The notes beneath the pieces were generated by a model that saw only the letters and a program-made list of their open reading frames with translations, did no database searches and was not told where the DNA came from. Shown here piece after piece: positions 2,619-43,435 of a DNA stretch of 64,000 bases. Each line of letters opens with the position of its first letter. Position 1 is the stretch's first letter. The DNA is from Anthoceros angustus (Eukaryota > Plantae > Anthocerotophyta), in the NCBI GenBank assembly GCA_010909165.1, contig MU008168.1:1178001-1242000 (forward strand), given 5' to 3'. The translations under genes were made by a program, and so were the position numbers.

Positions 2619-4331
2619 TGTGCCCGCGCAGAAGATCTGACATCAGGCAGACAGGTCCATTCCGATGTCCTGAGTAGTGTGCTTAACCCTGATGTATTTG
2701 TCGGGAGCTGCCTGGTGGAAATGTATGCAAGATGTGGGAGGTTGGATGATGCTCGTACAATCTTTGACAAGTTGGACTCGAGAAATGTGGTCACATGGAA
2801 TACGCTGCTTGGAGGGTATGCTGAGGGTGGGCGTGGGCAAGAAGCCCTTGCGCTCTATGCAAGTATGCAAGAGGAGGGAATCACTCTGCCTGACCATGTC
2901 ACGTTTTTGTGCCTCCTCAAAGCATGTGGGTGGTAGCAGTGGAACACTACACCAGGGAATGCGGCTTCATTCACAAATACAGGAAGCAGGTCTAGGGCAT
3001 TGGAGCAGGGAAGTCAGCTACATGACCAGTTTCAGGAGATGGGGCTGCAAGTTGACGTGGTCATTTCGAGCTGCCTGGTGGACATATATGCAAACTGTGG
3101 GAGCTTAGAGGATGCCCGCAGGGTGTTTGACGAGTCAGCCACAAGAGATGTCGTGACTTGGACTGCCATGCTCACTGCGTACGAGGAGCATGGTCTAGCC
3201 AAGAAGCGCTGTCTCTGTATGTGGTTGTGGGCAGCTGCCTAGTGGACATGTATGCGAAATGTGGGTGCTTGGATGATGCTCGGAGCGTGTTCTACACTCT
3301 GGATACCAGAGCCATCCTGACATGGAATGTGATGTTTGCAGGATATGTCTTGCACGGGCTGGGGCAGGAGGCCCTTGATCTCTATGCCGTCATGCATCAC
3401 CGTGGAATCACGGCCGCTGATCATGTTACATTCGCCCGTCTTCTAAAGGCATGTGCTCGCATGGGAGCATTGCACACGGGGCACCAGCTCCATGCTCAGG
3501 TTCGAGAGAGATGTTTGAAAGCGGATGTGGTTGTGGGCAGCTGCCTGGTGAACATGTATGCAAAATGCGGAGCTTGGACTGAGCCTGCAGAGTGTTTGAA
3601 AGCCTGCCCACAAAGAACGAGGTGACATGGAGTGCGGTAGTTCTTGCAGCGTATGGTCAGCACAGGATGGGTCAGGAAGCTCTCATGTGCTACGACAAAA
3701 TGGTGATGGCAGGCGTCCAGGCGAATGAAGTCCCGTTCCTTTCAATTCTCTCTGCCTGCAGTCATGCTGGCCTGGTGTGGGAAGGTCTGCAGTACTTCAA
3801 ATCCATGGACAGATATCACGGCATAGCTCCCAGAGCTGAGCACTATGCCTGTATGATACATCTCCTGGGACGTGCCGGACGCTTCACAGTGGTAGAAGAG
3901 CTCTTGTCAAGTATGCCGATGCAGCCTACTCTTTCCTTTCCATGTTAATGTCTCTGCTGGGCTTCCTGCAGGAAGCACAGTAATGTATCTCTCGCGGAGA
4001 ACAAGTCTTCGATCTGGCAGTGCGTCTGCAGCCCACAAATGCCGCAGCATACATGTTGATGTCATAGATGTACGCTGATGCGGGCCTTCCAGAGGACGCC
4101 CATAGGGTGGACAAGCGCAGGAAGACGGAAAGTGCTGCGTGGAAAGAGCCAGGCTGGAGCTGGATAGCGCATGACGAGGAAGTGCACACCTTTCTGGCGG
4201 GCCGCGTCCAGAACTCACAGCATAGTCAAGTGTATGACATGTTAGCCGAGGTAACCTGTAAGCAGGAGGCAGCACAGGCAGAACAGAGCGTGTGCTCGGT
4301 ATCCTCATCTCTGTCCGAGGGTCCCTCATGA
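2619..4331 (+). pseudogene. PLS-class PPR gene with E/E+ tail, 5'-truncated pseudogene (copy A)
   Basis: PPR motifs VFVGSCLVEMYARCGRLDDARTIFD, VVTWTAMLTAY, FLSILSACSHAGLVWEG and PRAEHYACMIHLLGRAG, plus E+ KEPGWSWIAHDEEVHTF. Frameshifts and an in-frame TAG (atgtcatagatg, ~4066) are shared with copy B. Confidence 0.88.
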
Positions 4332-4958
4332 TGCGTCCCTCTGCCCTCTACCACGTGCAGGTCTTGAGAAATGGATGGTGTGCATTGCTTCTGGGAAGCT
4401 ACGTGTATCCACGACTTGCTCCGAAGACAGAAGACAGCTCACCTTGGGAGCAGCATCAGGTGGCACAGGAATATACCTGTTCTGTTGTACATAGCAGTCT
4501 TGGTGAGATGAAAGAGCATTGCTTGACGTGGTGAAACACGAACCCAGCAAACAGTGTACGGATTGGGGCTGGACATCTCGCCTCCTCGAAACTATGGAAA
4601 CTGTCAGGAGTCGGTCTCATCCGATTCCTTTCATGAAAGGGCCATCTTCAAGGACGAAAGAGAGAGAGTGCAGCGCTCCTGTAGTCCAAAATGTAGTCCG
4701 AAACCACTGGTGTCAGGAATGCCTCGTCGTGCAAAGTCTACAGTGTAGACAGCTTTGTAACAAGTATGTAGCTAGAGAGGCGCCTTTGCAGGCGTGCAGA
4801 AGTCGGAGGCGTGCAGTGCACGCTTCTCCGCGCCGCTGGCCAGCACTGGCCCAGGAGGAGTGGATTCCACTCTCTCTGGAGTGGGACGCCCTTGGTTCTG
4901 CTTGCCTTCTTTTGCTAGTCCTCCTCACAGGGTGAGACGTTGTTGTGAAGGTTGGGCT

Positions 4959-7900
4959 ATGACGGATCCATCTCTTCCTCCCGGCGCCGCGCCGGTGGAC
5001 CTGCTCCACAGCCTCGAGTCCCGCTCGCCGCACCTGCGTGCTTTGCTTGCAGACCTGGAGTCCTACTCGCGACAGCCGTCGGAACTGCCGTCTGTTGATT
5101 CGTGGGGAAGCTACTTCAATTGCGACTGCGAGGACGGGGAATGTCACCACCGCGAGGAATGGCACTGGGAGGTGCGCTTGCGTCTACTCACAGCTATGGG
5201 CAGATGCCGGTCGCTCACGACAATTCGACTGAATCCTCGGCGGACGATGGGTCACAGCGTGAGGCAGAACGAGGCGGTGGCGCTCTTATCAGGCTTGCAA
5301 CACAACTTTGGGCTGACGGAGCTGGATCTGTATGGCTACAAGGGTTTTGGGACGGCAGCAGCCTGCCTGCAGTTGAGTGCCATCATCGACAGAACTTCTT
5401 CCTCACTGCAATCCCTCGGTCTGCAATATGTGGGATTGAGTGCAGACGGCCTGGGTGCCATCGCTGCAGCCCTTGGACGCAATGCCAGCTCATCAGAGCT
5501 GTTCAGCTTATCTCTGTGTGGGAACGACATTGGGAATGCTGTCGGGGCGCAACACTTGGCCGACATCCTTACCAACTCGCCCAAGCTCCGCATCTCGATG
5601 AGCAACATAGGGATGGACGAGGAAGGAGCCGTGGTGATTGCACAGGCCCTGGCGCATACCACCACACTGGCCGAGCTCACAATCGGAGATCCTGCGCCCC
5701 GGAATCCAAACCAGCGCGCGCCCATGTTCCTCGTTCCACTGCTCCAAGCTTTGGTGTGGCACACCGTGGCGGATCCTCCAGCTGCTGTTTCTTGCAATTA
5801 CTCCATCAGTAAGCTTGTCCTTGGGTGTCCGGGAGGCCAGGAGGCTGTGGAGCCGGGGCTGGGAGAAGCCCTGGCTCGGGTGCTTCGCACCAACCGGGCT
5901 CTGAAAGACCTCAAACTATCCAGCTTCTTCGTCAAACGCGGATTGGGAGCTCTGTGCGAAAACAGCAGCATCACCAATCTCCTGGTGGCCCACTCGCCGC
6001 AGTCGGACGATGATGACATGGATCCCATGCTGACCACCATCCTGGATGAGTGCGAGACTGTTGAGCAGGTGCAGATCCAGTTTGACAAGCCCTTTGGTCC
6101 GTCCAGCTTCACCAAGGCGTTTTTCCAAGGGTTCCTGCAGAAAAACCGCAGCATCAAGAGGCTGGTGTTGGATGGCTGGGATGGGCTGGACGAGGAGATG
6201 TTTGAAGACCTGATTCAGTCCTTGTCCACCAACACCAACACCTCTCTCGGGCTTGAGCACATCTCCATCGAGGGCACCTCATGGGAAAAGCAAGGCAGGG
6301 CCGAACGTCTGCAGGAAGCGTTGAGAGATGCATTGCGAGTGCAGCCGGAGCTGGCTGCGTTGCTTGCAGACCTGGAGTCCCACTCGGCAGGGCGGTCCAG
6401 GTCGGGGTGGTTAGGTGTTGATTCGTGGGACGCGACTTCCCATGGAACTGGGAGGACCCTGTTGATTCGTGGGAAAGCTACTTCAATTGCGACTGCGAGG
6501 ACGGGGAATGTCACCACCGCGAGGAATGGCACTGGGAGGTGCGCCTGCTCACAGCTATGGGCAGATGCCGGTCGCTGAGGAAGATTCGACTGAATCCTCG
6601 GCGGAAGATGGGTCACAGCGTGAGGCAGGACGAGGCGGTGGCGCTCTTATCAGGCTTGCAATACAACTTTGGGCTGACGGTGCTGGATCTGTATGGCTAC
6701 AAGGGTTTTGGGACGGCAGCAGCCTGCCTGCAGTTGAGTGCCATCATCGACAGAACTTCTTCCTCACTGCAATTCCTCGGTCTGCAATATGTGGGATTGA
6801 GTGCAGACGGCCTGGGTGCCATCGCTGCAGCCCTTGGCTCATCAGAGCTGTTCAGCTTATCTCTGTGTGGGAACGACATTGGGAATGCTGTCGGGGCGCA
6901 ACACTTGGCCGACATCCTTACCAACTCGCCCAAGCTCCGCATACTCTCGATGAGCAACATAGGGATGGACGAGGAAGGAGCCGTGGTGATTGCACAGGCC
7001 CTGGCGCATACCACCACACTGGCTGGGCTTAGAATCGGAGATCCTGCGCCCCGGAATCCAAACCAGCGCGCGCCCATATTCGTCGTTCCACTTCTCCAAG
7101 CTTTGGTGTGGCAAACCCAGGCGGATCCTCCAGCTGCTGTTTCTGGCAATCACTCCATCACACGGCTTGACCTTGGGTGTCCGGGAGGCCAGGAGGCTGT
7201 GGAGCCGGGTCTGGGAGAAGCCCTGGCTCAGGTGCTTCGCACCAACCGGGCTCTGAAAGACCTCAAACTATCCAGCTTCTTCGTCACACGCGGATTGGGA
7301 GCTCTGCGGGAAAACAGCAGCATCACCGAACTCCTGGTGTTCACTCGCGGCAGTCGGAGGATGATGACATGGATCCCATCCTGACCACCATCCTGGATGA
7401 GTGCAAGACTGTTGAGGAGGTGCAGATCCGGTTTGACAAGCCCTTTGGTCCGTCCAGCTTCACCAAGGCGTTTTTCAAGGGTTGCTGCAGAAAACCGCAG
7501 CATCAAGAGGCTGGGGTTGGATGGCTGGGATGGGCTGGACGAGGAGATGTTTGAAGACCTGATTCAATCCCTGTCCACCAACACCAACAGGTATCTCAGG
7601 CTGGAACACATCTCCATCGAGCGCACCTCGTGGGAAAAGCAAGGCAGGGCCGAACGTCTGCAGATAGCGTTGAGAGATGCACTGCGAGTGCAGCCGGAGC
7701 TGGCTGCCTTGCTTGCAAACTTGGAGTCCGAGTCCAGGTCAGTGTTGATTCGTGGGACGCGACTTCCCATGGAACTGGGAGGACCCTGTTGATTCGTGGG
7801 AAAGCTACTTCAATTGCGACTGCGAGGACGGGGAATGTCACCACCGCGAGGAATGGCACTGGGAGGTGCGCTTGCGTCTGCTCACAGCTATGGGCAGATG

Positions 7901-10900
7901 CCGGTCGCTGAGGAAGATTCATCTGAATCCTCCGGCGGAGGAGGGTCACAGCGTGAGGCAGGACGAGGCGCTGGCGCTATCAGGCTTGCAACACAACTTG
8001 TGCTGGAGGAGCTGAATCTGTATGGCTACAAGGGTTTGGGACGGCAGCAGCCTGCCTGCAGTTGAGTGCCATCATCGACAGAACTTCTTCCTCACTGGAC
8101 TTCCTCGGTCTGCAACATCTGGGATTGAGTGCAGAAGGACTGGGTGCCATCGCTGCAGCCCTTGGACGCAATCAGAGCTGTCCAGATTGTCTCTGTGGGA
8201 ACGACATTGGGAATGCTGTCGGGGCGCAACACTTGGCCGACATCCTTACCAACTCGCCCAAGCTCCGCAATCTCTGGATGAGCAACATAGGCATGGACGA
8301 GGAAGGAGCCGTGGTGATTGCACAGGCCCTGGCGCATACCACCACACTGGCTGGGCTTAGAATCGGAGATCCTGCGCCCCGGAATCCAAACCAGCGCGCC
8401 CATGTTCCTCGTTCCATTGCTCCAAGCTTTGGTGTGGCAAACCCTGGCGGATCCTCCAGCTGCTGTTTCTGGCAATCACTCCATCACACGGCTTGTCCTT
8501 GGGTGTCCGGGAGGCCAGGAGGCTGTGGAGGGCTGGGAGAAGCCCTGGCTCAGGTGCTTCGCACCAACCGGGCTCTGAAAGACCTCAAACTATCCAGCTT
8601 CTTCGTCACACGCGGATTGGGAGCTCTGCGGGAAAACAGCAGCATCACCAAACTCCTGGTGTTTCACTCGCGGCAGTCGGAGGATGATGACATGGATCCC
8701 ATCCTGACCACCATCCTGGATGAGTGCAAGACTGTTGAGGAGGTGCAGATCCGGTTTGACAAGCCCTTTGGTCCGTCCAGCTTCACCAAGGCGTTTTTCA
8801 AGGGTTGCTGCAGAAAACCGCAGCATCAACAGGCTGGTGTTGGATGGCTGGGATGGGCTGGACGACGAGATGTTTGAAGACCTGATTCAATCCCTGTCCA
8901 CCAACACCAACAGGTATCTCAGGCTGGATCACATCTCCATCAAGGGCACCTCATGGGAAAAGCAAGGCAGGGGCGAACGTCTGCAGAAAGCGTTGGGAGC
9001 TGCGAGTGCAGCCCAGCTGCGTGCGTTGCTCGCAGACTTGGAGTCCGAGTCGCCAGTGCTGCAAGAACTCCCACGGAACTGGGAGGATCTGTTGATTGTG
9101 GGAAGCTATTTCAATTGCGACTGCGAGGACGGGGAATGTCACCACCGCGAGGAATGGCACTGGGAGGTGCGCTTGCGTCTGCTCACAGCTATCGGCAGAT
9201 GCCGGTCGCTGAGGAAGATTCATCTGAATCCTCGGAAGAGGGTCACAGCGTGAGGAGGACGAGGCGGTGGCGCTCTTATCAGGCTTGCAACACAACCTTG
9301 TGCTGGAGGAGCTGAATCTGTATGGCTACAAGGGGTTTGGGACGGCAGCAGCCTGCCTGCAGTTGAGTGCCATCATCGACAGAACTCATCGCTCACTGGA
9401 CCTCGGTCTGCAATATGTGGATTGAGTGCAGAAGGCCTGGGTGCCATCGCTGCAGCCCTTGGCTCAGCTCAGTGCTGTCCAGATTGTCTCTGTGTGGGAA
9501 CGACATTGGGAATGCTGTCGGGGCGCAACACTTGGCCGACATCCTTACCAACTCGCCCAAGCTCCGCAATCTCTGGATGAGCAACATAGGGATGGAAGGA
9601 GCCGTGGTGATTGCACAGGCCCTGGCGCATACCACCACACTGGCTGGGCTTAGAATCGGAGATCCTGCGCCCCGGAATCCAAACCAGCGCGCCCATGTTC
9701 CTCGTTCCATTGCTCCAAGCTTTGGTGTGGCAAACCCTGGCGGATCCTCCAGCTGCTGTTTCTGGCAATCACTCCATCACACGGCTTGTCCTTGGGTGTC
9801 CGGGAGGCCAGGAGGCTGTGGAGCTGGGCTGGGAGAAGCCCTGGCTCAGGTGCTTCGCACCAACCGGGCTCTGAAAGACCTCAAACTATCCAGCTTCTTC
9901 GTCACACGCGGATTGGGAGCTCTGCGGGAAAACAGCAGCATCACCAAACTCCTGGTGTTCACTCGCAGTCGGAGGATGATGACATGGATCCCATCCTGAC
10001 CACCATCCTGGATGAGTGCAAGACTGTTGAGGAGGTGCAGATCCGGTTTGACAAGCCCTTTGGTCCGTCCAGCTTCACCAAGGCGTTTTTCCAAGGGTTG
10101 CTGCAGAAAACCGCAGCATCAACAGGCTGGTGTTGGATGGCTGGGATGGGCTGGACGACGAGATGTTTGAAGACCTGATTCAATCCCTGTCCACCAACAC
10201 CAACACCCATCTCAGGCTGGATCACATCTCCATCAAGGGCACCTCATGGGAAAAGCAAGGCAGGGGCGAACGTCTGGAGAAAGCGTTGAGAGCTGCGCGA
10301 GTGCAGCCGCAGCTGCGTGCGTTGCAGACCTGGAGTCCCACTCGCCAGTGCTGCAAGAACTCCCATCTGTGGATTTGTGGGAAGCTACTTCAATTGCGAC
10401 TGCGAGGACGGGGAATGTCACCACCGCGAGGAATGGCACTGGGAGGTGCGCTTGCGTCTGCTCACAGCTATCGGCAGATGCCGGTCGCTCAGGAAGATTC
10501 ATCTGAATCCTGGGAGGAGGGTCACAGCGTGAGGAGGACGAGGCGCTGGCGCTGCTATCAGGCTTGCAACACAACCTTGTGCTGGAGGAGGATCTGTATG
10601 GCTACAAGGGGTTTGGGACGGCAGCCTGCCAGGCACTGATTGCCGTCATCGACAGAACTCATCGCTCACTGGAATCCTCGGTCTGCAATATGGGATTGAG
10701 TGCAGAAGGACTGCCATCGCTGCAGCCCTTGGACGCAATGCAGCTCATCAGTGCTGTCCAGATTGTCTCTGTGTGGGAACGACATCGGGAATGCTGTCGG
10801 GGCGCAACACTTGGCCGACATCCTTACCAACTCGCCCAAGCTCCGCAATCTGGATGAGCAACATAGGCATGGACGAGGAAGGAGCCGTGGTGATTGCACA

Positions 10901-13900
10901 GGCCCTGGCGCATACCACCACACTGGCTGGGCTTAGAATCGGAGATCCTGCGCCCCGGAATCCAAACCAGCCGCGCCCATGTTCCTCGTTCCATTGCTCC
11001 AAGCTTTGGTGTGGCACACCCTGGCGGATCCTCCAGCTGCTGTTTCTGGCAATCACTCCATCACACGGCTTGTCCTTGAGTGTCCGGGAGGCCAGGAGGC
11101 TGTGGAGGGCTGGGAGAAGCCCTGGCTCAGGTGCTTCGCACCAACCGGGCTCTGAAAGACCTCAGACTATCCAGCTTCTTCGTCACACGCGGATTGGGAG
11201 CTCTGCGGAAAACAGCAGCATCACCAAACTCCTGGTGTTTCACTCGCGGCAGTCGGAGGATGATGACATGGATCCCATCCTGACCACCATCCTGGATGAG
11301 TGCAAGACTGTTGAGGAGGTGCAGATCCGGTTTGACAAGCCCTTTGGTCCGTCCAGCTTCACCAAGGCGTTTTTCAAGGGTTGCTGCAGAAAACCGCAGC
11401 ATCAACAGGCTGGTGTTGGATGGCTGGGATGGCTGGACGACGAGATGTTTGAAGACCTGATTCAATCCCTGTCCACCAACACCAACACCCACCTCAGGCT
11501 GGATCACATCTCCATCAAGGGCACCTCATGGGAAAAGCAAGGCAGGGGCGAACGTCTGGAGAAAGCGTTGGGAGCTGCGCGAGTGCAGCCGCAGCTGCGT
11601 GCGTTGCTCGCAGACTTGGAGTCCGAGTCGCCAGTGCTGCAAGAACTCCCATCTGTGGATTTGTGGGAAGCTATTTCGATTGCCTTTGCCAGGAGGCCTA
11701 CAGGGAGTGTCCACCGGGGCAGTGGCAGTGGTACGTACGCCTGCGCCTGCTCACAGCTATCGGCAAATGCCGGTCGCTGAGGAAGATTCATCTGAATCCT
11801 CCGGGGAGGAGGGCACTTACAGCGTGAGGGAGGTAGAGGCGCTGGCTCTGCTATCAGGCTTGCAACACAACCTTGTGCTGGAGGAGCTGAATCTGTATAC
11901 AAGGGGTTTGGGACGGCAGCCTGCCTGCAGTTGAGTGCCATCGACAGAACTGCTATCTCACTGGACTTGCGGTCTGCAATATCTGGGATTGAGTGCAGAA
12001 GGACTGGGTGCCATCGCTGCAGCCCTTGGACGCAATGCCAGCTCATCAGTGCTGTCCAGATTGTCTCTGTGGGAACGACATCGGAATGCTGTCGCAACAC
12101 TTGGCCGACATCCTTACCAACTCGCCCAAGCTCCGCAATCTATGGATGAGCAACATAGGCATGGACGAGGAAGGAGCCGTGGTGATTGCACAGGCCCTGG
12201 CGCATACCACTACACTGGCTGGGCTTAGAATCGGAGATCCTGCGCCCGGAATCCAAACCAGCCCGCGCCCATGTTCCTCGTTCCATTGCTCCAAGCTTTG
12301 GTGTGGCACACCCTGGCGGATCCTCCAGCTGCTGTTTCTGGCAATCACTCCATCACACGGCTTGTCCTTGAGTGTCCGGGAGGCCAGGAGGCTGTGGAGC
12401 CGGGGCTGGGAGAAGCCCTGGCTCAGGTGCTTCGCACCAACCGGGCTCTGAAAGACCTCACACTATCCAGCTTCTTCGTCACACGCGGATTGGGAGCTCT
12501 GCGGAAAACAGCAGCATCACCAAACTCCTGGTGTTCCACTCGCGCAGTCGGAGGATGATGACATGGATCCCAACCTGACCGCCATCCTGGATGAGTGCAA
12601 GACTGTTGAGGAGGTGCAGATCCGGTTTGACAAGCCCTTTGGTCCGTCCAGCTTCACCAAGGCGTTTTTCAAGGGTTGCTGCAGAAAACCGCAGCATCAA
12701 CAGGCTGGTGTTGGATGGCTGGGATGGGCTGGACGACGAGATGTTTGAAGACCTGATTCAATCCACCAACACCAACACCTCAGGCTGGATCACATCTCCA
12801 TCAAGGGCACCTCATGGGAAAAGCAAGGCAGGGGCGAACGTCTGGAGACTTGGGAGCTGCGCGGTGCAGCCGCAGCTGCGTGCGTTGCTCGCAGACTTGG
12901 AGTCCGAGTCGCCAGTGCTGCAAGAACTCCCATCTGTGGATTTGTGGGAAGCTATTTCGATTGCCTTTGCCAGGAGGCCTACAGGAGTGTCAACACCGGG
13001 GCAGTGGCAGTGGTACGTACGCCTGCGCCTGCTCACAGCTATCGGCAAATGCCGGTCGCTGAGGAAGATTCATCTGAATCCTCCGGGAGGGGCACTTACA
13101 GCGTGAGGGAGGTAGAGGCGCTGCTATCAGGCTTGCAACACAACCTTGTGCTGGAGGAGCTGGGGCTGTTGGCTACGTGGGCTTTGGGACGGCACCCTGC
13201 CTGCAGGCATTGACTGGCGTCATGGAGAGATGCTATTTCTCATTGGACTTGCTGGGTCTGCAATATCTGGGATTGAGTGCAGAAGGACTGGGTGTCATCG
13301 CTGCAGCCCTTGGACGCAACCGCAGCTCAGTGCTGTCCAGATTGTCTCTTTGTGGGAACGACATCGGAATGCTGTCGGGGCGCAACATTTGGCCGACATC
13401 CTGAGGAATTCGATCGCCCTCCGCAATCTCTGGATGAGCAATATTGGCATGGATGAGGAAGGAGCCGTGCTGATTGCAGAGGCCCTGGCGAATACCACCA
13501 CCCTGCCGAGCTTCAGAATCGGAGATCCTGTGTTCATTGGTTCGATTCTCGAAGCTTTGGTGTGGCACACGCCTGGTGGATCCTCCAGCTGCTGTTTCTG
13601 GCAATCACTCCATCACACGGCTTGTTCTTGAGTGCCCAGGAGGCCAGCAGGCCGTGGAGCCGGACTGGGAGAAGCCCTGGCTGGGGCTTAGAATCGGAGA
13701 TCCTGCGCCCGGAATCCAAACCAGCCCGCGCCCATGTTCCTCGTTCCATTGCTCCAAGCTTTGGTGTGGCACACCCTGGCGGATCCTCCAGCTGCTGTTT
13801 CTGGCAATCACTCCATCACACGGCTTGTCCTTGAGTGTCCGGGAGGCCAGGAGGCTGTGGAGCCGGGGCTGGGAGAAGCCCTGGCTCAGGTGCTTCACCG

Positions 13901-16900
13901 GGCTCTGAAAGACCTCACACTATCCAGCTTCTTCGTCACACGCGGATTGGGAGCTCTGCGGAAAACAGCAGCATCACCAAACTCCTGGTGTTCCACTCGC
14001 GGCAGTCGGAGGATGATGACATGGATCCCAACCTGACCGCCATCCTGGATGAGTGCAAGACTGTTGAGGAGGTGCAGATCCGGTTTGACAAGCCCTTTGG
14101 TCCGTCCAGCTTCACCAAGGCGTTTTTCAAGGGTTGCTGCAGAAAACCGCAGCATCAACAGGCTGGTGTTGGATGGCTGGGATGGGCTGGACGACGAGAT
14201 GTTTGAAGACCTGATTCAATCCCTGTCTACCAACACCAACACCACCTCAGGCTGGATCACATCTCCATCAAGGGCACCTCATGGGGGAAAAGCAACGTCT
14301 GGAGAAAGCGTTGGGAGCTGCGCGTGCAGCTGGGAGTTGGGTGCGGTGCAGCCGCAGCTGCGTTGCTCGCAGACTTGGAGTCCGAGTCGCCAGTGCTGCA
14401 AGAACTCCATCTGTGGATTTGTGGGAAGCTATTTCGATTGCCTTTGCCAGGAGGCCTACAGGAGTGTCAACACCGGGGCAGTGGCAGTGGTACGCCTGCG
14501 CCTGCTCACAGCTATCGGCAAATGCCGGTCGCTGAGGAAGATTCATCTGAATCCTCCGGGAGGATGGGCACTTACAGCGTGAGGAGGTAGAGGCGCTGGC
14601 GCTGCTATCAGGCTTGCAACACAACCTTGTGCTGGAGGAGCTGGGGCTGTTGGCTACGTGGGCTTTGGGACGGCACCCTGCCTGCAGGCATTGACTGGCG
14701 TCATGGAGAGATGCTATTTCTCATTGGACTTGCTGGGTCTGCAATATCTGGGATTGAGTGCAGAAGGACTGGGTGTCATCGCTGCAGCCCTTGGACGCAA
14801 CCGCAGCTCAGTGCTGTCCAGATTGTCTCTTTGTGGGAACGACATCAGGAATGCTGTCGGGGCGCAACATTTGGCCGACATCCTGAGGAATTCGATCGCC
14901 CTCCGCAATCTCTGGATGAGCAATATTGGCATGGATGAGGAAGGAGCCGTGCTGATTGCAGAGGCCCTGGCGAATACCACCACCTGAGCTTAAAATCGGA
15001 GATCCTGTGTTCATTGGTCCAATTCTCGAAGCTTTGGTGTGGCACACCCTGGCGGATCCTCCAGCTGCTGTTTCTGGCAATCACTCCATCACACGGCTTG
15101 TTCTTGAGTGCCCAGGAGGCCAGCAGGCCGTGGAGCCGGACTGGGAGAAGCCCTGGCTCAGGTGCTGCGCACCAACCGTGCTCTCACTGACCTCAGACTT
15201 GCCAGCTTCTTCGTCACACGCGGATTGGAAGCGCTACCTGAAAACAGCAGCATCACCCAACTCCAAGTAAGTCACACGCGGAATTCGGAGGATGATGACA
15301 TGGATCCTATGCTGATCACGATTCTTCAGGAGTGCAAGAATGTCCAGCAGCTGCAGCTTCAGTTTTATAAGCCCTTTGGTCCATCCAACTTCTCCAAGGC
15401 GTTTTTCCAAGGGTTGCGGGATAATCGTAGCATCAAGACGCTTGTGTTGGATGACTGCGAAGGATTGGATGACTACATGTTCCAGAACTTGATGCGGTCT
15501 CTGGGACGCAACTGCAACAACGTCCTGGAGAACATTTCCATCAAGAAAACAACCTGGGAAAGCGAAGGCAAAGGAATACAGATCCAGAATCTGCTCTCAA
15601 GGAACGTGCACAGAAGAAGCGCTGCTCCGCAGGGTAGGTGCCCCAAGCCAGTAGCTTGCTACCCTTGTCCTGATTTGTATCTACTGTCAGAACCCACTAA
15701 CTCAGATGTATACTGACCCCTTCTCACTTGTGCAGGTTCGGAAGGAGTGCCACCACCGGTCACGGCAACTGTGGCAACCTCTGGTGCCGCAGCAGGTAAT
15801 GAAACTTCGTGAATACAATGTGGATTTGATCCAACCACTTCCAAGCTGTTGTTGTTGTTGCAACTAGTTTGAATGCATGTACCGAATGCACCACTTGATG
15901 CTGCTGCTGGCAGACAGTCTGATGATTGACTGATTGGCTGTCTTTGTTTTCACCACAATTTCCAGTTGCTGTTCCTGAGGAGCTCAGTACCCTGCTTGCC
16001 GACCTCGACTCACCTTCGCCTACACTCAGTCGTCTTCCTCGTGTGGAAGCGTTTGGGCACTTGTTCGAGAGGGACGTGGAACATCCAAAGGTGGAACTTG
16101 AACTGCGCATGCGCCTTATGAAGGCTATCGGGAAATGCCCCACACTCAGATTCATAGATCTCGACCCTCTTGGGCGTCGAAATTACAGGGTGACGGTGGC
16201 AGAGGCGATGGCGCTGCTGGAAGGCCTGAGCTCGAATGCAATAGTGGAACGGCTGGACTTGAGTGGCTTCCTTGGTTTTGGAACAGGTGAAGTCTGCGCT
16301 GCAATCGCCGCTATCTTGCAATCCAGCCGCACCTTGCAATTTCTGAATATGGGATACACTGGCATGACTGTCGAAGGACTGGCTTGCATGCGACATAATC
16401 GCAGCACTGTGCTTCGCACCTTGTATCTTTCTGGAAACACGACTGTGGAGAAGGTGTTGGAGCTCAACACCTGGCTGATATCCTGACCAGCACTCCCGCT
16501 CTTCGCAACCTGGGGATGTGGGATACAGGGATGGATGAGGCGGGAGCATTGATGATAGGGGATGCTCTGGCTCAGAACACCACACTTGACTGGCTGAACA
16601 TAGGATTCAATCAAGCGTGGAGGCCAAAGCAGGCAGGGATGATGGCCACGCTGTTAGCTCGAGCATTCACCTACCAAATGTTGCTTTCGCTTCTGTTAAC
16701 GAGTCTGTCACACATCTCCAGCTGGAAGTATGGGGAGCAGGACAGCAGCCTGTCATCGCTGAGTTGGGAGAAGCTGTGGCCCGCATGCTGCGGTCGAACA
16801 TGACTTTAAGGCATCTCGATGTATGTAGCTGCTTTATAAGCCAGGGGTGTGAGGAGTGACAACAGCAGCGTTATCCGTGTGACAGTCCGACATGGTAGCT

Positions 16901-19900
16901 CTAGTGCTAAGGAGGACTAAGAGGATGATGCCAATCCTGCCAGACAGTGGAAAGTTTACAATTAGCTCAGAACAGTTTGGGACCTTTGGGATCATCCGAC
17001 CTCCCAAGACGTTTTCAAATCGTTGCAGGACAATCGTTACCTCAACAGGTTGGTGTTGGATGGCTGGAAAGGGTTGGACGACAATATGTTCCAAGACCTG
17101 TTGCGGGCTCTGCAAGTGAACACCAATTTGAAGAGTATATCGTTCGAGAACACTGTGTGGAAAAGTCAGGAAAAGGAGCTGCAGTGGATGAACTACTACG
17201 CCAAAACAGGGAATACCGGAAAGCTCTGGCAGGGGCTCCAACAATGCCAGTGAAATCATGTCGCCTCGTACTTTGTGGATTTCCATATGCAGGTGAGCCA
17301 CATGCTGAACCCAAAGTTTGTACATCCCAAATGGCGTAGTTTGCAGACTTCACTGCAGTTGTTTCTGTCTTCTCTACAGCTGTTTTCTTGTCTTAACGTT
17401 GTTTTCGTCTCCGAGTGTAATCGGTGGTAAATGTTGCTGTTTCAGGAAAACCACGATACGGAATACGTTGATGAGTATGCAAACACACGAAAACGATGTT
17501 GAGATGGAGGGTGAAACGATTTCGAAGCACATACCTCGAACCCTTGGGTTTGAGGTTGAGGTGATAAAAGATGGTCCAGCCTTGAGAATTACCGTTTGGG
17601 ATCTTGCAGGGCACCAGGAGTTTCATGCTCTTCACGATTTCGTCTTTCCTGCTGTGAATAACTCTTCTCTCTTGTTTGTCTATAACCCGTTCAAATTTGG
17701 TGGTAATTATTCAAGTGCGGAAATGAAGGATAGAAAGGATTTTCGAGATGAATTTATTTATTGGCTTAAATTTATTGCTTCCAACTCATGGTTAGCTCAA
17801 CAGGTGAAACCTTATGTTCATGTGGTGGTAACATTTAATGACAAGCTTGAAGGTAGGATGTCTTGAAATACGGAGGAAGTGTTGGTGATGAAGAAAAAGT
17901 TTATGGCTATTGTGGAAATATCCGATGATCCCACTTTCATCAATGGACAAAGTTGGAAAGATGTGTGTGAAGTACGCAGGCTTGTACAGGAAAAGCTACA
18001 ACAACGTATTAGCACATTGGCTCCAATTCCCAGCATTTGTGAGCAGCTCCGTGTACATGTACGGAAATGGGCTGAGAATGAACATGGTATGCCAATCATT
18101 TCTGTTGAAAAGTTTATCGAGTTGTTTTACTCCACGTGTAAGGTGGCAATAGGGCATCCACTCATCTCATCTTATAGAAGATTTCTTAGAGACTTCATGG
18201 ACAAAGAGGATAGCTGGAAAGTAGTAGCATCATATCTCAAGGATCTGTGGAGATCATATATTTCCAAATGTCACTTATGGTCATCAACCTCCGATGGTTA
18301 GGAATGGGCGTTTTGGTCAGCTGATTAGTATATTTGGTGAACGGACAATAGGCAAGATTGGCTTCAAGTTCAAAATGGGTTCATCAGCAAATATGGGTTG
18401 AGTAGCCTTCTAAAATGTCTTTGAACAAGGTAGGGCTTGATGAAACCATTGTGAGCGAGGAAAAATTCATCCAACTGATGTGTGAGTTGCACCTTTGCTA
18501 TGAAAGTGGAGATGTGGATGGAGAAACTCAATATTTTGTTCCAATAAGTATGTATAAAGAAGAAGATTTATTAGGAGTTGATCAACAGTTAGTATGGCCT
18601 TCACAGAGTCTGGATCATGATTATATCTTTATGGGTTTGCGTTTACAATGTGATGATCAAGATTGTACATTCCTCACACCAGGATTTTTTCCTAGGTTAC
18701 AGGTTGTAACTTTTCTCAAGTTGAACTATCTTTTGTTTTATGTCCTGAAACTTCTTCTTTTGTTTTATTATTATTAACTGTTAACTAGTCTCATTGTTCC
18801 TATATATTGTAGGTACTTTTATACACATATTGTTTGAAAAAAGTGGGTTGATGAGGAAAGACCAATTGATTCAGAATAAAATTGGAGCCTAATGTCCTTT
18901 TAATATCTGCAGAGGCAATGGATATCTTTGTGGAATTTAATGCCAAAGTGGGTTGTTACATAGATATATTGGCCCGATCTACTCAAGGCTATTTAGAGTC
19001 CATGTCATTTTGAGGAACATATTGTATCTCGATTCGGGCATTTTGTGTATGAGGGTTGTGCAGGGTCACTAGTTGAAGGTGTTCTTCGACATGAATGTGT
19101 GGCATCCCTCACTCTATGCGAATAGGAGACGAGTGTATCACACGAGCTAGTTGAAAAAAGCGGTATGCAAAGGATCGATGCTGCACACTACACGCAATCT
19201 TGGAAGTGTATTTGCGACAGCAACACCCCAGGCGACGCAATTATTTTAAAGGCCAACCGAGAGTATGCAACGGTGGTGGATGGTCATGTCATTTTGGGAC
19301 AAAGAGGACCACAAAGCCAAGCGAGTTCCAAGGTTTGAAGCTCTCAATTCTGGATAGTTTGTGTTGCACTAGGTGTCCTTCTTCTCACATGTAGTTTCTA
19401 AGTAGCTTTGCACAAGTAGGCCGTTTCTTGCATACTCTAATTATACCGGCAGATTGAAATCCAGAAGTTGCTTTGGTGGAACTCCTACACTATCCCGCAA
19501 GTAGGGAAGAAGAAGCCTATTGTTGGGAGTAGTTATCCTAACCATGGTGTGGAAGAAGGTAATCGAAGAGGTTTGGCAATGATTGTGAGTGGAAGAGGAT
19601 AGACTGGAGGATCTGAGACAGAGGGCGACTTGATTTTCTTTTCAACACATTGGCATGCTTTTATTAGTGGACAGGCGAGAGTGTCAAAGCACATATTAGG
19701 AAAGTTGCCGATCTCTACTAGCTAAGGACGATTGCTTTGTGTTGCATCAATGCTCATGGGGGATTGAAGAAAATGGCAGAGACTACATTGAAATTGGAAA
19801 ACCACCTCGGGAGAAGCTATATGTTTACGATGACATCGTGAAGCCCATTTGCGAATCCAAGTGGTTGAAAGACAAGCCTAAGGTGTTTCTGATCAATGCT

Positions 19901-20274
19901 TGTCGAGCCATCCAAAGTGGGAAAGCTAAGGACTCTGAAGTCGAGGGTAGCCAAATTGTGAGTGAGAGAGCCGGAGAAGATCTACGCCTGCCTTCTGAGA
20001 AGGATTGTCTCATCTTCTTCTCGACCAGTCATGGACAACAATCGTTTAGAGATGTCAACAATGGCTCAAACTTTATCATAGCTTTGATGGAAGCCATCAT
20101 TGAGGGGTCGGAAAAAAAGGATGATATGTTCAGCATTTTAACATCAGTGATTGCCAAGGTCACGGAGATGCCACGTTGGCTCCGAAATCAAGAAGGGTCT
20201 TATGAGAGGAGACCCAGTGTCCGGTGTTTTCCTCCACACTCACGAGAAAGCTTTGGTGGTGGCCTCGGCCTTAG
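4959..20274 (+). CDS. Giant LRR(8+1 domains)-ROC-COR-caspase-like protein, TORNADO1-related (copy A); frameshifted in this sequence
   Basis: ATG 4959 (MTDPSLPPG). RNI-like LRRs (LSLCGNDIGNAVGAQHLADILTN). Introns ~15,634-15,735 and 15,796-15,965. Walker A GFPYAG|KTT split by an intron at ~17,293-17,446, RTLGFEV, WDLAGHQEFHALHD, VVVTFND. COR-region GLRLQCDDQDCTFLTPGFFPRLQV resembles TRN1. C-terminal KPKVFLINACRA protease domain. Confidence 0.85.
5000..15633 (+). repeat. Coding tandem array of eight ~1.3-1.35-kb LRR-domain units
   Basis: Marker MDP(M/I/N)LT.ILDEC recurs at ~6020, 7370, 8695, 9985, 11270, 12565, 14025 and 15300. Unit-start motif L(R/A)ALLADLES recurs with the same period. Confidence 0.93.
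19560..20274 (+). other. Caspase-like (clan CD, C14) catalytic domain of copy A gene
   Basis: A/B consensus: RRGLAMIVS..DCFVCCINAHGG (His codon 19,755-57)..KPKVFLINACRA (Cys codon 19,901-03)..DCLIFFSTSHGQQSFRDVNNGSNFIIALMEAI..QCPVFSSTLTRKLWWWPRP*. Confidence 0.85.
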
Positions 20275-20459
20275 GTGCAAGGAAGCAGCCCGGCAAAAGT
20301 TGGATTGAGCATGAGCAGAAGGTTCACACATTTCGAGTTGCAGACCAAGAGCATCAGGAAGCACCATTGCTATATGCATTGCTGGAAGACCTAACCACTA
20401 AGCTAAAGGAGGCTGGGTATGTAGACTTCGAGGAAAGCTGGCATGGAGAGCTGAATTGA
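20275..20459 (+). pseudogene. Orphan PPR E2/E+ tail fragment directly after the caspase stop (copy A)
   Basis: ARKQPGKSWIEHEQKVHTFRVADQEHQEAPLLYALLEDLTTKLKEAGYV matches the PPR PG-box/E+ consensus K.PG.SWIE...VH.F...D..H....IY..L..L...MK..GY. Confidence 0.75.
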
Positions 20460-20539
20460 ACACAAGGCAGATGTCGTAAGTAGTAACCTTCATTTATCAG
20501 CAATTAAGCTTAGTACATTCAAAGAGTGATTTCTTCTGG

Positions 20540-22944
20540 CTACAGTTGCTGTTTCCTAAGGTCCTTCTGCAATGCATTCTGCTCACTCCAGTGACGGAAA
20601 GCTTCCCTTACAGGATTGAGCTCTGCATCCTCTATCTGAGCCTGAGAGGTGACATTGTCTATCCAGAAAGACCACACCGGAGTAGTGTGGTCCAACAGGG
20701 GGCCACACTCAGGAGCACCACATTGTGCAAAAATGTTTGCATAATGCTCTTCACCTCGCTGGATGGTTCTAACCTTGAATGTTTAGCATCATTCATGGTT
20801 GCCATCAAGTTCTGGGCATATGAGCTGGGCTGCCGAAAATTGTGGAAGTCGTTGTCTACAAGGACCAAGCCTTCTGACGGTGCAAGTGGCAGGATTATGC
20901 GGGAGTGTCGAGCCAGTGACAGAGGTATCACGTCAGGGGAAGCACTCCCATAACACAGCCACAGCTGTTCCCACCATCTTTCTGATCTGAAAGCAAATCA
21001 GCCAACAGACAACTCTTGACACTCCAGCAAGCAGTACAACCACCAAATGCACACCAGTGCCAGAACAGACAGAACCCGACATCATACAAAATCGTGTGTA
21101 CCTGATGAAGCATAAAGGACTCGCCAGTGATGGACAATCTCAGGAGACGGACATTTCCGCAAATCTCAATCTGAGAACTACAGGAGCAGGAGATGATGTG
21201 CCGAAAATGTGCAGTCCTGATTTTGTCTTTGCTGTCAGGCTCAAACAACCACCTTGCCCTTGCTGTAGATTCATCATCTTCTGCCCCATCTGGAACCTGG
21301 CTTTCTTCATCCAAAGATGATTGGTCATCTTCCGGAATGCTCACACCACTGTCACAATCATCCAGCACCTCCGGGACAACCGCCGATTCATCTTCGGAAG
21401 ACCGACTACCCCTGCGGTTAAAGTAGGCAGGCTTGTTCACGTCTTTGTACTTGCTCCGAGCGGTGTAATTATGGAAAGGATGCCTTCCTGCCAATTGACA
21501 ACAGCCAATGTCACGGGTACTGCTACACGTCCTCCTAACCAAGCTTTCGGTGCCTCAATTGGCTGACAACCTGAAATGCTGATAATATGTTGTTCAGCTC
21601 TGTCACTCGATCTTCACTTGCTGCCATTGAACCAGAGTGATTGATGTCAAGCACAGCCGGTGGTAGTAGATACTCGTATGTGCGGGTAAAACACATCTTT
21701 CTTGAATCGAAGGACCTGCAGAACCAGGATGGTCAGTGCCGAAAACGGCAGTTATGACTGAAACATTCCACACATTGAGCTTAAGTCGAGTCAGACCTGG
21801 GCACTGGGACAACAGAAAACACTTTTATGCTTGCAGGTAAGTGAGCATTGATACTTTCCGCCAATGCAAGCCCGTCCCTGTCATGGACCCATTCTGCTTC
21901 TGGGACTTCCATCTTCATAGAAATGACTGTGCTTATGGAGTGCACCTGAGCTGAACGTAGAAACACAATTAGAACCTTTTGATCTGCGTCACATTCTACC
22001 AACCCAATCACAATGACGGGCAGCTGAAGAGCAACCTCCTCAAATCTAGCAATTTGAGGTGCAGTTACACTAGGACCTTCCAGTCGTGCTAACGACTGGT
22101 AACATATAGTGCATCAGACTTTGACACATACAGAATCTCGTAGGGCACGACGGTTACCCCTTTATCAGTTCGGCTGCTGCGTGCCCATCCAAGTCTGTGA
22201 AGATTCCCAAAGTTACTAGCAAGCATTCCATGAGCCGCCAATATGGCTTTCTCCAGCTCTGCTTCAACGGCTGCAAGAATACAGACCGGAGAAAGCATAA
22301 TACTAGCAGCAGCTCAGCCATTGTAGCTTGGACAGAAGCTACTTACTGGGGACTCCTGTAGACCCTTGCAACTGCAGTCCTGCAAAAACCCGAGTGACTT
22401 CAGGACAACCGCATACTTTCCTCTCAAGCATGATAACCAAATGTCGATCATTTGCTAATCTATTTGGGCTGATCCTTCTACCAACCTTTGTACTCGGTTC
22501 CAACATAGCCAACCCAGAAGCAAACCTTCTTCTTCACCCTCCCATCACCAGGAGCAGTAGCAGACGGTTCCAGCAGCCCGTCACTTCCCTCACCACAGGG
22601 CAAAGCTCAACTGAAGTTCTTTCTGCCATCCTCCATGAAGTCCTCCTACAAGAGTGACCTGATCCACCCTTAGTCTCCAACAGTCCCAGAAATTTTCCTC
22701 TGGTGAATGCTCGAGAGCTTACTTTTCCTGCATACATGACAGCAAGACAGATGATCACCACATTCCGCTTCTATGACCCAACAGGATGCACACCCACGAC
22801 ATAAGAAGGACAACATGATAGGATGTACGCCATCACTCACTCACTTGAGTCACATTGCCCGTGTCCCTTGGCCAGAGTCTGGAAAGAGGGCGGCACCAGG
22901 GTGCAGAGCTTGCAGCTGCTCCACCACACTGCGCTGCTACGCAT
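20540..22944 (-). CDS. tRNA pseudouridine synthase (TruA/PUS1 family), copy 2, full length
   Basis: Same 5' exons as copy 1 (ATG 22,944) plus [41 protein letters not shown] and C-terminus ..DLRKQQL* (stop 20,540-42). A few 1-bp indels. Confidence 0.88.
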
Positions 22945-23684
22945 GGCACCCGAATGCTTCAAAATTTTGCCTCACAGCACACAGTGTGCCAAATACAGTC
23001 TTGTCTCAAGTCCTGTTAGGCAGGACGGCGGATTTCCTCTACATACATGTATTCGGTATCATAAATCTCACACTGATAATATAAAATGGAATCAAATCGA
23101 TGCTTAGTGTTTTCTGCTCGCTGTTTTCGCTTGGTGTTCTCCATATTAGGAGTTGTTTGGAGAAGAACCTTAAGCATTTTGCGCTTCGATCGGTGTAATT
23201 TAGGTATGCCATGATATAAGTTGTTAAGTACTAAGTTCTATGTCAAGAAATTTATCCAAGAGGACTACAATGGACTTTTTCTTCTAATTCACTTCAGAAG
23301 AAGTTAGAAGCATAGGTAATAGAGAGAATTTAAATGTAAGGTTGAGATTGAGCTAATTATTATCTAGCATGTAAAATCGGCGTTTATTTAATACCATATA
23401 GGTAGTGGAGAGCTATTGATTTGGAAAGCCTTACATCTATGACACCATATAACTAGAGAAAGTTATTGATTCAAAACCCGGATGTAAGGAACAATTATGC
23501 AATAAAGAAAGTTGTTGGTACGATTTAAAAATCTGGATACAATGTCAAGTTGACTATTTCTCGATTGCACACCACACAAATAAAACTATTAATATATTAT
23601 TTTATAAAATGATAAAGTTGTGAATCCTCTTCTCTCAAGCATGGAGCTCCCTAGCCTAATGGAAAGCATCTTACTTCTAATAAA

Positions 23685-35700: not shown

Positions 35701-38028
35701 ATGTGTATGAAGTACGCAGGCTTGTACAGGAAAAGCTACAACAACGTATTAGCACATTGGCTCCGATTCCTAGCATTTGTGAGCAGATCCGTGTACATGT
35801 ACGGAATTGGGCTGAGGATAAACATGGTATGCCAATCATTTCTATTAAAAAGTTTATCGAGTTGTTTTACAGCACATGTAAGGTGGCAATAGGGCATCCA
35901 CTCATCTCAAAGTCTTATAGAACATTTGTTAGAGACTTCATGGACAAGAAGGATAGCTGGAAAGTAGTAGCATCATATCTCAAGGATTCAGGGGAGATCA
36001 TATATTTCCAAATGTCACAGCTTATGGTCATCAACCTCCGATGGTTAGGAATGGGCGTTTTGGTCAGTTAGTATATTTGGTGAACGGACAATAGATTGGC
36101 TTCAAGTTCAAAATGGGTTCATTAGCAAATTTGAGTAGCCTTCTAAAATGTCTTTGAACAAGGTAGGGCTTGATGAAACCATTGTGAGCGAGGAACAATT
36201 CATCCAATTGATGTGTGAGTTGCACCTTGCCATGAAAGTGGAGATGAGGAAGGAGAAGTCAATATTTTGTTCCAATATGTATGTATAAAGAAGAAGATGG
36301 ATTAGGAGTTGATCAAGCAGTTAGTATGGCCTTCACGGTGGTAATCTTCATGATTATATCTTTATGGGTTTGCGTCTACAATGTGATGATCAAGATTGTA
36401 CATTCCTCACACCAGGATTTTTTCCTAGGTTACAGGTTCGTAACTTTTCTGAAGTTGAATATCTTTTGTTTTATGTCCTGAAACTTCTTCTTGTTTTATT
36501 ATTATTAACTACTCTAGTCTCATTGTTCCTATATATTGTAGGTACTTTTATACAAATATTGTTTGAAAAAAGGCTGGGTTGATGAGGAAAGACCAATTGA
36601 TTCAGAATAAAATTGGAGCCTAATGTCCTTTTAATATCTGCAGAGGCAATGGATATCTTTGTGGAATTTAATGCCAAAGTGGGTTGTTACATAGATATAT
36701 TGGCTCGATCTACTCAAGGCTATTTAGAGTCCATGTCATTTCTGGAGGATCATATTGAATCTCAGATTCGGTCATTTTGTGCTTCGCATGAGGGTTGTGC
36801 AGGGGTCACACTAGTTGAAGGTGTTCTTCGACATGAATGTGTAATGTCCCTCACTCTATGCAGATACAGGAGATACGAGTGTATTCTGACAAACGAGCTA
36901 GTTGAAAAGGTGGTTGATGCAAAGGATCGACGTCTTGCACACTACACGCAATCTTGGAAGTGTATGCGGCGGCCGACTCATCATTTTAAAGGCCAACATA
37001 GAGTATGCAACGTGGTGGATGGTCATGTCATTTTGGGACAAAAGAGGACCTTGCAAAGCGAGCGAGTTCCAAGGTTTGAAGCTCTCAATTGTGGATAGTT
37101 TGTGTTGCACTAGGTGTCCTTCTTCTCTTCACATGTAGTTTCTAAGTAGCTTTGCACAAGTAGGCCGTTTCTTGCATACTCTAAGGCTATACATTGCAGG
37201 ATTGAAATCTAGTAGTTGCTTTGGTGGAACTTCTACAGCTATCCCATAGTAGCTTTGCGAAAGAACAACTGATTGTTGGGAGTAGTTATCCTAACCATGG
37301 TGTGGAAGAAGGTAATCGAAGAGGTTTGGCAATGATTGTGAGTGCGGAAGAGGATAGACTGGAGGATCAGACAGAGGGCGACTTGATTTTCTTTTCAACA
37401 CATTGGGCTTTCATCTGATATTTTAGTGGACAGTTCGAGTGTCAAAGCACATTTAGGAAAGTTGCCGATCTCTGCCTTGAAAAGGACGATTGCTTTGTGT
37501 GTTGCATCAATGCTCATGGGGGGATTGAAGAAAATGGCAGAGACTACATTGAAATTGGAAAACCACCGGAGAAGCTATATGTTTACGATGACATCGTGAA
37601 GCCCATCTTGAATCCAAGTGGTTGAAAGACAAGCCTAAGGTGTTTTGATCAATGCTTGTCGAGCCATCCAAAGTGGGAAAGCTAAGGACTCAAGTCGAGG
37701 GTAGCCAAATTGTGAGTGAGAGAGCCGGAGAAGATCTCGCCTGCTTTCCGAGAAGGATTGTCTCATCTTCTTCTCGACCAGTCATGGACAACAATCGTTT
37801 AGAGATGTCAACAATGGCTCAAACTTTATCATAGCTTTGATGGAAGCCATCATTGAGGGGTCGGAAAAAAAGGATGATATGTTCAGCATTTTAACATCAG
37901 TGATTGCCAAGGTCACGGAGATGCCACGTTGGCTCCGAAATCAAGAAGGGTCTTATGAGAGGAGACCCCAGTGTCCGGTGTTTTCCTCCACACTCACGAG
38001 AAAGCTTTGGTGGTGGCCTCGGCCTTAG
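26747..38028 (+). CDS. Giant LRR(5+1 domains)-ROC-COR-caspase-like protein (copy B); frameshifted in this sequence
   Basis: ATG 26,747 (MADPSLPAG). Intact 312-aa LRR ORF 33,643-34,581. GFPQAG|KTTIR P-loop. 289-aa ROC ORF 35,202-36,071 (WDLAGHKEFHALHD). CCINAHGG at ~37,500, INACRA at ~37,657, C-terminus QCPVFSSTLTRKLWWWPRP* (stop 38,026-28). Confidence 0.85.
26790..33345 (+). repeat. Coding tandem array of five ~1.3-kb LRR-domain units
   Basis: MDP.LT.ILDEC marker at ~27,800, 29,110, 30,417, 31,707 and 33,010. Confidence 0.92.
37310..38028 (+). other. Caspase-like catalytic domain of copy B gene
   Basis: DCFVCCINAHGGIEENG is in one frame here (His codon 37,515-17). aatgcttgtcga = NACR (Cys codon 37,657-59). 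C-terminal STLTRKL motif intact. Confidence 0.85.
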
Positions 38029-38213
38029 GTGCAAGGAAGCAGCCCGGCAAAAGTTGGATTGAGCATGAGCAGAAGGTTCACACATTTCGAGTTGCAGACC
38101 AAGAGCATCAGGAAGCACCATTGCTATATGCATTGCTGGAAGACCTAACCACTAAGCTAAAGGAGGCTGGGTATGTAGACTTCGAGGAAAGCTGGCATGG
38201 AGAGCTGAATTGA
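38029..38213 (+). pseudogene. Orphan PPR E2/E+ tail fragment (copy B)
   Basis: Same sequence as 20,275-20,459. Confidence 0.75.
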
Positions 38214-38292
38214 ACACAAGGCAGATGTCGTAGTAGTAACCTTCATTTATCAGCAATTAAGCTTAGTACATTCAAAGAGTGATTTCTTCTGG

Positions 38293-43375: not shown

Positions 43376-43435
43376 TTTTCGCTCCTGTTTTTGCTACCTC
43401 TCGTTCATCGATCACTTCCGACGCAGCGGTTGGTC

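Follow-up and report, generated by a model that had tools for sequence, protein, structure and literature searches.

Within the genome assembly of the hornwort Anthoceros angustus (GCA_010909165.1) is a stretch of 64,000 nucleotides (contig MU008168.1, positions 1,178,001 to 1,242,000 of the forward strand), here called the window and numbered from its first letter, which carries two copies of a gene whose domains have the order of a Roco protein with a protease at its end. These domains are a series of leucine-rich repeat (LRR) domains of the ribonuclease inhibitor (RNI) type, a Roc GTPase, a COR region and a C-terminal domain of the caspase type. On balance we favour, with modest confidence, the view that the copies belong to a transcribed multi-copy family encoding a very long single-chain RNI-LRR(8+1 or 5+1)-Roc-COR-caspase protein, and that the approximately 70 breaks in the reading frame of copy 1 are mostly letters missing from the assembly.

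Organization of the locus

Self-comparison of the window revealed a tandem segmental duplication, with unit 1 extending over approximately 1–21870 and unit 2 over approximately 21870–39621; a third unit begins after about 39621 and breaks off near 41789. Each of the two full units bears one plus strand gene of the same type, and the order LRR(n)-Roc-COR-caspase is collinear in copies 1 and 2. All of the domains and motifs listed in a first-pass annotation, made from the sequence alone, were located on the plus strand in the order given there, its coordinates being right apart from the hopping between frames. The LRR units of copies 1 and 2 are designated A1–A8 and B1–B5, respectively, and the features of the genes are:

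4959–20274, plus strand: copy 1 of the gene, with eight LRR units and a ninth diverged LRR domain, Roc, COR-A, a COR-B-sized region and the caspase domain
4959–6458, plus strand: start ATG and LRR unit A1, the only fully open unit, within a 594-amino acid open reading frame (ORF) at 4794–6578
6459–15633, plus strand: LRR units A2–A8, approximately 1.23–1.48 kb each
15634–15735, 15736–15795 and 15796–15965, plus strand: intron, 60-nt mini-exon and intron, from RNA joints
15966–17292, plus strand: ninth diverged LRR domain, linker and first half of the P-loop (GFPYAG at 17277–17294)
17293–17445, plus strand: intron within the P-loop glycine codon, from the joint in an RNA contig
17446–18702, plus strand: Roc GTPase and COR-A, from Pfam Roc, PDB and BLASTP
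18703–18812, plus strand: intron, from an RNA joint
18813–19334, plus strand: COR-B-sized region with RNA coverage; its copy-2 counterpart is a 165-amino acid open stretch at 36601–37095
19335–19499, plus strand: putative intron between the COR-B-like and caspase exons, from the gap in RNA depth and GT-AG pairs in copy 2
19500–20274, plus strand: caspase-like protease domain, from Pfam Peptidase_C14, PDB and tblastn with relatives
26747–38028, plus strand: copy 2 of the gene, with five LRR units (26880–33352), a ninth-type LRR domain, Roc-COR-A, a COR-B-like region and the caspase domain

The downstream flanks of the two copies (20261–21869 and 38014–39620) show one substitution in 1.6 kb, and the near-identical flanks differ chiefly by 1-nt indels, whereas the gene bodies are 4% diverged with 13 indels per kb. 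This contrast could result either from gene conversion with other members of the family or from poor consensus quality in the multi-copy part. Together with the patchy identity along the alignment of copies 1 and 2, and a DNA word depth over the gene body some 10–25 times that of the flank, it might also be taken as the mark of an assembly chimera, or of a transposon-like amplified mosaic of gene fragments containing no real gene. We consider this very improbable. The domain order is collinear in two copies, the intron positions are conserved and confirmed by RNA, the substitution patterns across 13 LRR units preserve the ORFs, and no transposon features were seen within the duplicated unit.

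The LRR array

Copy 1 contains eight LRR-domain units of approximately 1.3 kb between 5092 and 15640, followed by the ninth, diverged domain; copy 2 has five units and one domain of the ninth type. The amplified units are 87–92% alike, each encoding an entire LRR domain of approximately 440 residues, and are 39% identical to the ninth domain. The copy-2 equivalent of the latter (33643–34578) matches Pfam LRR_6 with 34.7 bits (cut-off 23.4), and the top PDB matches of the ninth domain are RNI-like proteins at 1e-12 (ribonuclease inhibitor and the LRRs of NLRP1). The nine RNI-type LRR domains originally reported at this locus are borne out. The language-model neighbours of unit A1 are the LRR_6 and LRR_TMOD-LMOD clusters. 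Since ORFs cross the unit junctions in frame (those at 8720–9253 and 12591–13106 among them), the array is built as a single long exon. A Cys/His-rich cap opens each of the LRR units (5090–14520); those of A1–A5 are of the SYFNCDCEDGECHH type, while A6–A8 possess a different type, SYFDCLCQEAY. Unit A7 also has a 174-nt internal insertion which repeats part of the unit (window positions 13548–13689).

The Roc GTPase and COR region

The Roc domain scores 27.6 bits against Pfam Roc in copy 2 (cut-off 27) and 24.3 bits, just under the cut-off, in copy 1; its top PDB match is the Roc domain of LRRK2. The full set of G-motifs claimed for it in the first-pass annotation was found. In copy 1 these are GFPYAG/KT (17277–17294 and from 17447, the P-loop being split by an intron and resuming as KTTIRN at 17447), RTLG (17537), DLAG (17600) and TFND (17831). 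Roc-COR-A is open for 300 amino acids in copy 2 (35169–36068).

COR-A is identified by BLASTP, in which P0224, a bona fide Roco protein, aligns collinearly from switch II through both hallmark COR-A motifs (E 1e-6), and weakly over the motif at the end of COR-A. P0224 is a Roco protein of the bacterial type and possesses Pfam Roc, COR-A and COR-B. The region which follows COR-A is of the right size for COR-B, but neither Pfam nor BLASTP gave a COR-B match to it. Of the Pfam profiles suggested at the outset for this gene, Roc (copy 2) and Peptidase_C14 pass, COR-A remains sub-threshold (13.4 bits against a cut-off of 35.3, E 0.076) and COR-B has no match.

The first language-model Atlas rank of the Roc-COR-A exon is a streptophyte Roc/COR-A cluster (score 0.96), the model of which resembles that of the Tornado 1 cluster (TM 0.79). 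A single-sequence AlphaFold model of the same exon was unusable (pLDDT, the predicted local distance difference test, 39). The COR region had been called TORNADO1-like; COR-A stands by collinear BLASTP, but COR-B was not detected by sequence and the putative kinship with TORNADO1 (TRN1) comes by way of one language-model hit. Neither the Roc-COR exon nor the 594-amino acid LRR ORF gave a match in word-based protein searches, under length limits that exclude full-length relatives, and scans of metagenomes with the Roc-COR exon and with the caspase piece gave no matches.

The caspase-type protease domain

The C-terminal domain matches Pfam Peptidase_C14 with 67.8 bits (E 1.5e-18) in copy 1, and with 48 bits for the copy-2 fragment, so the protease was not left without the clan CD profile match on which the first proposal depended. 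Its best PDB matches are caspase-7, -3, -1 and -8, and 109 PDB caspase chains were matched at E ≤ 0.01. No metacaspase kinship was found, all of the best 60 PDB matches being caspases, and the top library matches are animal caspases and a plant caspase-like family rather than metacaspases. By these comparisons the predicted protease is of the caspase and not the metacaspase type.

In copy 1 the motifs are GLAMIVS (19570, frame 1), DRGRLDFLF (19617, frame 0), NAHGG (19749, frame 0), INACRA (19892, frame 2) and SFRD (20042, frame 2), with a C-terminal frameshift at 20213; the copy-2 domain requires at least four frame changes. The QACRG of caspases reads NACRA here, and the arginine of the caspase 'SWR' S1 motif is retained as SFR, aligned with caspase-7. 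The first S1 arginine is retained in relatives, that of P0003 aligning with the DRNG of caspase-8; the corresponding stretch of the window is frame-broken. An intact His-Gly/Cys dyad on a caspase fold had been described in the first-pass annotation. The C14 fold and both motifs are present, but as assembled the His motif (NAHGG) and the Cys motif (INACRA) lie in different frames, 0 and 2 in copy 1, and 0 and 1 in copy 2. In RNA contigs an additional TC follows 19737 and an additional G follows 19757, and these letters bring the His motif into the frame of the Cys motif.

Transcription and splicing

RNA joints were obtained from one run with spliced contigs (X1); the contigs of this family are 70–980 nt long. 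Three joints are of the GT-AG type (15632/15735, 15792/15963 and 18700/18811, the last cut 2 nt further on), and the first two carry the frame, free of stops, from unit A8 by way of the 60-nt mini-exon into the ninth LRR domain. The fourth, 17292/17445, comes from a 980-nt contig and falls within the P-loop glycine codon, its ends being non-canonical as aligned. At this junction a canonical GT-AG intron leaves the window one G short of the RNA in copy 1; in copy 2 it is in frame. Coverage by RNA contigs extends to the COR-B-like region and to the caspase exon, the depth being 0 over 19338–19453. The family is transcribed and spliced. The RNA contigs differ by substitutions from both copies, and transcription is assigned to the family, not to these copies.

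The step from COR to the caspase exon is not spanned by any read or contig. The family being multi-copy, its contigs are short, which accounts both for the missing bridge and for the fact that the paralogue from which an RNA contig derives cannot be fixed. The claim of one spliced unit has therefore fared unevenly; there are four RNA-supported introns and RNA over every part, but the frame is broken as assembled and the caspase junction is unbridged.

The unbridged junction raises the question of two neighbouring genes instead of one, the first a TRN1-like LRR-Roc-COR gene and the second, downstream of it, caspase-like. Apart from the missing joint and the gap in RNA depth, the splice is undefined, there being several in-frame GT-AG choices, and the relatives of the protease have another partner, NB-ARC-LRR. 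We nevertheless consider two genes improbable. In neither copy does the caspase exon offer an in-frame ATG upstream of the domain, and in both it begins only some 165 nt past the COR-B-like exon on the same strand. Furthermore, copy 2 possesses in-frame GT-AG junctions consistent with the RNA coverage, either of the pairs 37074..37249 and 37074..37252 fusing its COR-B-like and caspase ORFs.

Breaks in the reading frame

In the assembly neither copy reads as one open frame. Frame changes were scored by frameshift-aware dynamic programming alignment to the unit A1 protein. Units A1 to A8 require 0, 2, 5, 9, 11, 11, 9 and 7 changes (approximately 54 in the array), and B1 to B5 require 9, 13, 8, 14 and 3. 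For the remainder of copy 1, beginning with the ninth LRR domain, the frame map indicates approximately 15 further changes. The ninth-domain region of this copy passes through frames 2, 1, 0, 1 and 0, an in-frame stop at 17864–17866 parts Roc from COR-A (copy 2 is open there), and three more frame changes occur in the Roc/COR-A exon between 18245 and 18400. Introns were rejected as the source of the changes inside the LRR units, since homologous translation continues past each shift with nothing lost.

If the breaks were real, both copies would be recently decayed pseudogenes, with intact expressed LRR-Roc-COR-caspase members elsewhere in the genome. To this the density of breaks (approximately 70 in copy 1 and a like density in copy 2) is well suited. 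Of the exon indels between the copies 82% are not multiples of three, and the exons are as indel-rich as the introns. Some frameshifts are common to many units and to the orthologous A8/B5 and A6/B4. RNA contigs exactly match neither copy, and nearly all of the RNA depth carries the longer state at 18843, 18873, 19737 and 19757, where DNA contigs carry the shorter one. Decay, however, yields nonsense substitutions as well as frameshifts. The LRR units contain 101 frameshifts and 0 stops in approximately 5000 aligned codons, against 35.6 expected when the 1105 observed substitutions are placed randomly, and the 3' part has 1 stop codon against 6 expected. Whether the breaks are noise or decay, this pattern indicates that the LRR array evolved as coding sequence.

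The indels themselves also have the character expected of lost letters. Of the distinct indels listed relative to the RNA contigs, 19 of 19 are letters that the window lacks, and the letters carried by the RNA restore the frame wherever this could be checked (the P-loop; 18843/18873, with GC and G added; and 19737/19757). Indel density is nearly independent of substitution divergence between the copies, and 100-nt segments without a substitution still contain 0.83 indel events. The 1-nt losses which are shared fall in short homopolymers, where systematic errors recur. As a single-copy control, the SUV3-like helicase ORF at 46092–47873 (593 amino acids) is intact. One DNA contig agrees with copy 1 at 12 of 12 copy-separating sites, yet differs from the window by indels. 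We had at one stage preferred pseudogenes as the leading reading, because of the shared frameshifts and the DNA contigs at 19737/19757; this was withdrawn in view of the no-stop test, the one-sided indels and the divergence-independent indel rate. Pseudogenes are now a possibility which we doubt, and poor polishing or gap-filling of the repeated stretches is probably the source of most of the breaks.

Several observations weigh against the view that the breaks are mostly missing letters in one long gene, in addition to the unbridged caspase junction and the substitutions that separate the RNA contigs from both copies. At 18843, 18873, 19737 and 19757 most DNA contigs (run X2) have the same shorter state as the window, and some breaks, at least, therefore exist in the real DNA of many family copies. 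The G after 18873 is found in 23.5 of a DNA depth of 404, and the TC and G at 19737 and 19757 in 0 of 214 and 0 of 393, respectively. Unit A1 is break-free over 1.8 kb, its counterpart B1 has nine breaks, and uniform noise fails to explain this. Some of the missing stretches are of 4–5 nt and lie outside homopolymers. Lastly, the ratio of nonsynonymous to synonymous substitution (dN/dS) is 0.56–0.96 between units and 0.65 between copies, so that constraint is weak.

Relationship to other Roco proteins and caspases

TRN1, the one plant Roco protein known, possesses one LRR domain and is not known to have a protease or any other effector domain. In common with the hornwort gene it has an RNI-type LRR domain at the N-terminus, with Roc and COR after it. 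The hornwort gene differs in the amplification of the LRR domain (8+1 or 5+1) and in the caspase-type domain beyond COR, and membership of the TRN1 subfamily was not found; word-based protein searches gave no direct sequence match to TRN1. The LRR-Roc-COR core is also common to LRRK2, DAPK1 and the bacterial Roco proteins, but whereas LRRK2 carries a kinase, and DAPK1 a kinase and a death domain, the effector here is a caspase-fold protease. Pfam revealed no NB-ARC or NACHT ATPase in any piece of either copy, and the gene does not group with the nucleotide-binding LRR receptors (NLRs). From its Roc and COR-A domains, the predicted protein is a member of the Roco family with a caspase-type effector, and neither a TRN1 orthologue nor an NLR.

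According to the literature, caspases are confined to animals (PMC10896300, PMC5756287). The hornwort domain keeps the 'SWR' arginine of the animal enzymes (MEROPS C14A) as well as their His and Cys motifs, but identity is at most 34%, NACRA replaces QACRG, and a CARD, DED or other death-fold prodomain is lacking. When the caspase piece was compared with 1.84 billion representative proteins, nothing exceeded 38% identity among the best 150 matches. The best of these belong to animal caspases or to a small plant family which includes a hornwort transcript, the other near relatives coming from mosses. None of the best 150 combined Roc or COR with a caspase domain, the long matches among them having been scanned and found without Roc or COR. 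A Roco-caspase fusion is not described in the literature searched, and the word caspase does not occur in the Roco reviews found; the architecture, which the first-pass annotation did not know from land plants, was absent from both the literature and the protein collections searched.

The moss relatives are themselves fused to a switch NTPase and LRRs. In Ceratodon purpureus (KC19_5G008800, KC19_5G008700) and in metagenome relatives, Peptidase_C14-NB-ARC-LRR proteins carry a protease of the same family, 30–38% identical to that of the hornwort, with SAHG and INACRG-type motifs and a C-terminal L(Y/W)W motif in common. A single chain combines Peptidase_C14, NB-ARC and LRR in two annotated C. 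purpureus proteins, P0153 and P0158, the latter of which has apparently lost the catalytic His and Cys. On moss-like metagenome contigs, plant caspase-like relatives lie 0.3–1 kb upstream of NB-ARC-LRR ORFs. One such contig (L002:1855-5564; also L001, L003 and L004) has two tandem pairs in which an NB-ARC-LRR ORF is preceded, at a distance of 275 nt, by a caspase-like ORF. The literature searched contains no description of plant NLRs with an N-terminal domain of the caspase type. In the mosses the protease precedes a STAND ATPase (NB-ARC) in the chain, whereas in the hornwort gene it comes after a Roc-COR GTPase; the hornwort LRRs stand first and are of another type.

Variation in LRR copy number, comparable to the eight and five units found here, is known from the LRR-ROCO genes of brown algae, which have been proposed as immune receptors with variable LRR copy number (PMC3341825, PMC11378527). 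The brown algae shuffle single LRRs as exons, whereas in the hornwort whole LRR domains of approximately 440 amino acids are repeated in one exon and a protease is attached. The likeness to NLRs of the apoptosome or inflammasome type is one of logic only.

Possible function and significance

As in other Roco proteins, which dimerise via COR (PMC6337361), the Roc-COR portion would act as a nucleotide-dependent dimerising switch. The LRR array would bind a ligand or guard a host target, and dimerisation would bring two protease domains together and so activate them by proximity, with an immune response or cell death as the output. The gene would in that case specify a protease receptor which is gated by its GTPase and serves in immunity or cell death. 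Since the same protease family is found on the NB-ARC receptors of mosses, the role of an immune or death executioner seems the most likely one, and by analogy the moss NB-ARC-LRR relatives fit a protease domain serving as an interchangeable executioner module. The fullest form of this proposal, a functional plant receptor of approximately 5000 residues in which a variable array of LRR domains acts through the Roc-COR switch to activate directly an Asp-specific, animal-type caspase domain, we put forward tentatively and regard as rather doubtful.

Textbook statements have it that plants possess only metacaspases (PMC10896300, PMC5756287). A Roco switch joined to a caspase-type protease in a transcribed plant family would, if true, be new on two counts, and with the moss NB-ARC-LRR relatives it would represent a plant receptor-plus-protease module for death or immunity on two NTPase scaffolds. 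Were the functional-receptor proposal correct, true caspase-like executioners would be wired to immune receptors in non-seed plants, and the gene would offer a testable case for the control of an effector by Roc-COR dimerisation. The assembly is untrustworthy at the base level in repeated gene families, which bears on other caspase-like loci of this genome.

Other features of the window

A remnant resembling the E motif of pentatricopeptide repeat (PPR) proteins lies at the 3' end of each duplicated unit:

20151–20459, also 4068–4331 and 37959–38210, plus strand: PPR E-motif-like remnant

This remnant (SWIEHEQKVHTF...) shares its letters with the end of the caspase exon but is read in a different frame; it belongs to the duplicated unit and not to the gene, and Pfam E_motif reaches no better than E 0.099, for 4068–4331. 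Tandem repeat arrays of 80–85 nt are located approximately 2.5 kb upstream of each gene copy (2117–2553 and 23905–24339), and recur beyond the truncated third unit (41876–42203 and 43028–43376). A 139-amino acid ORF (45051–45470) precedes the SUV3-like helicase ORF. Further downstream, two plus strand ORFs of 321 and 266 amino acids (52885–55406) resemble, by eye, the endonuclease and a later part of a retrotransposon without long terminal repeats (non-LTR).

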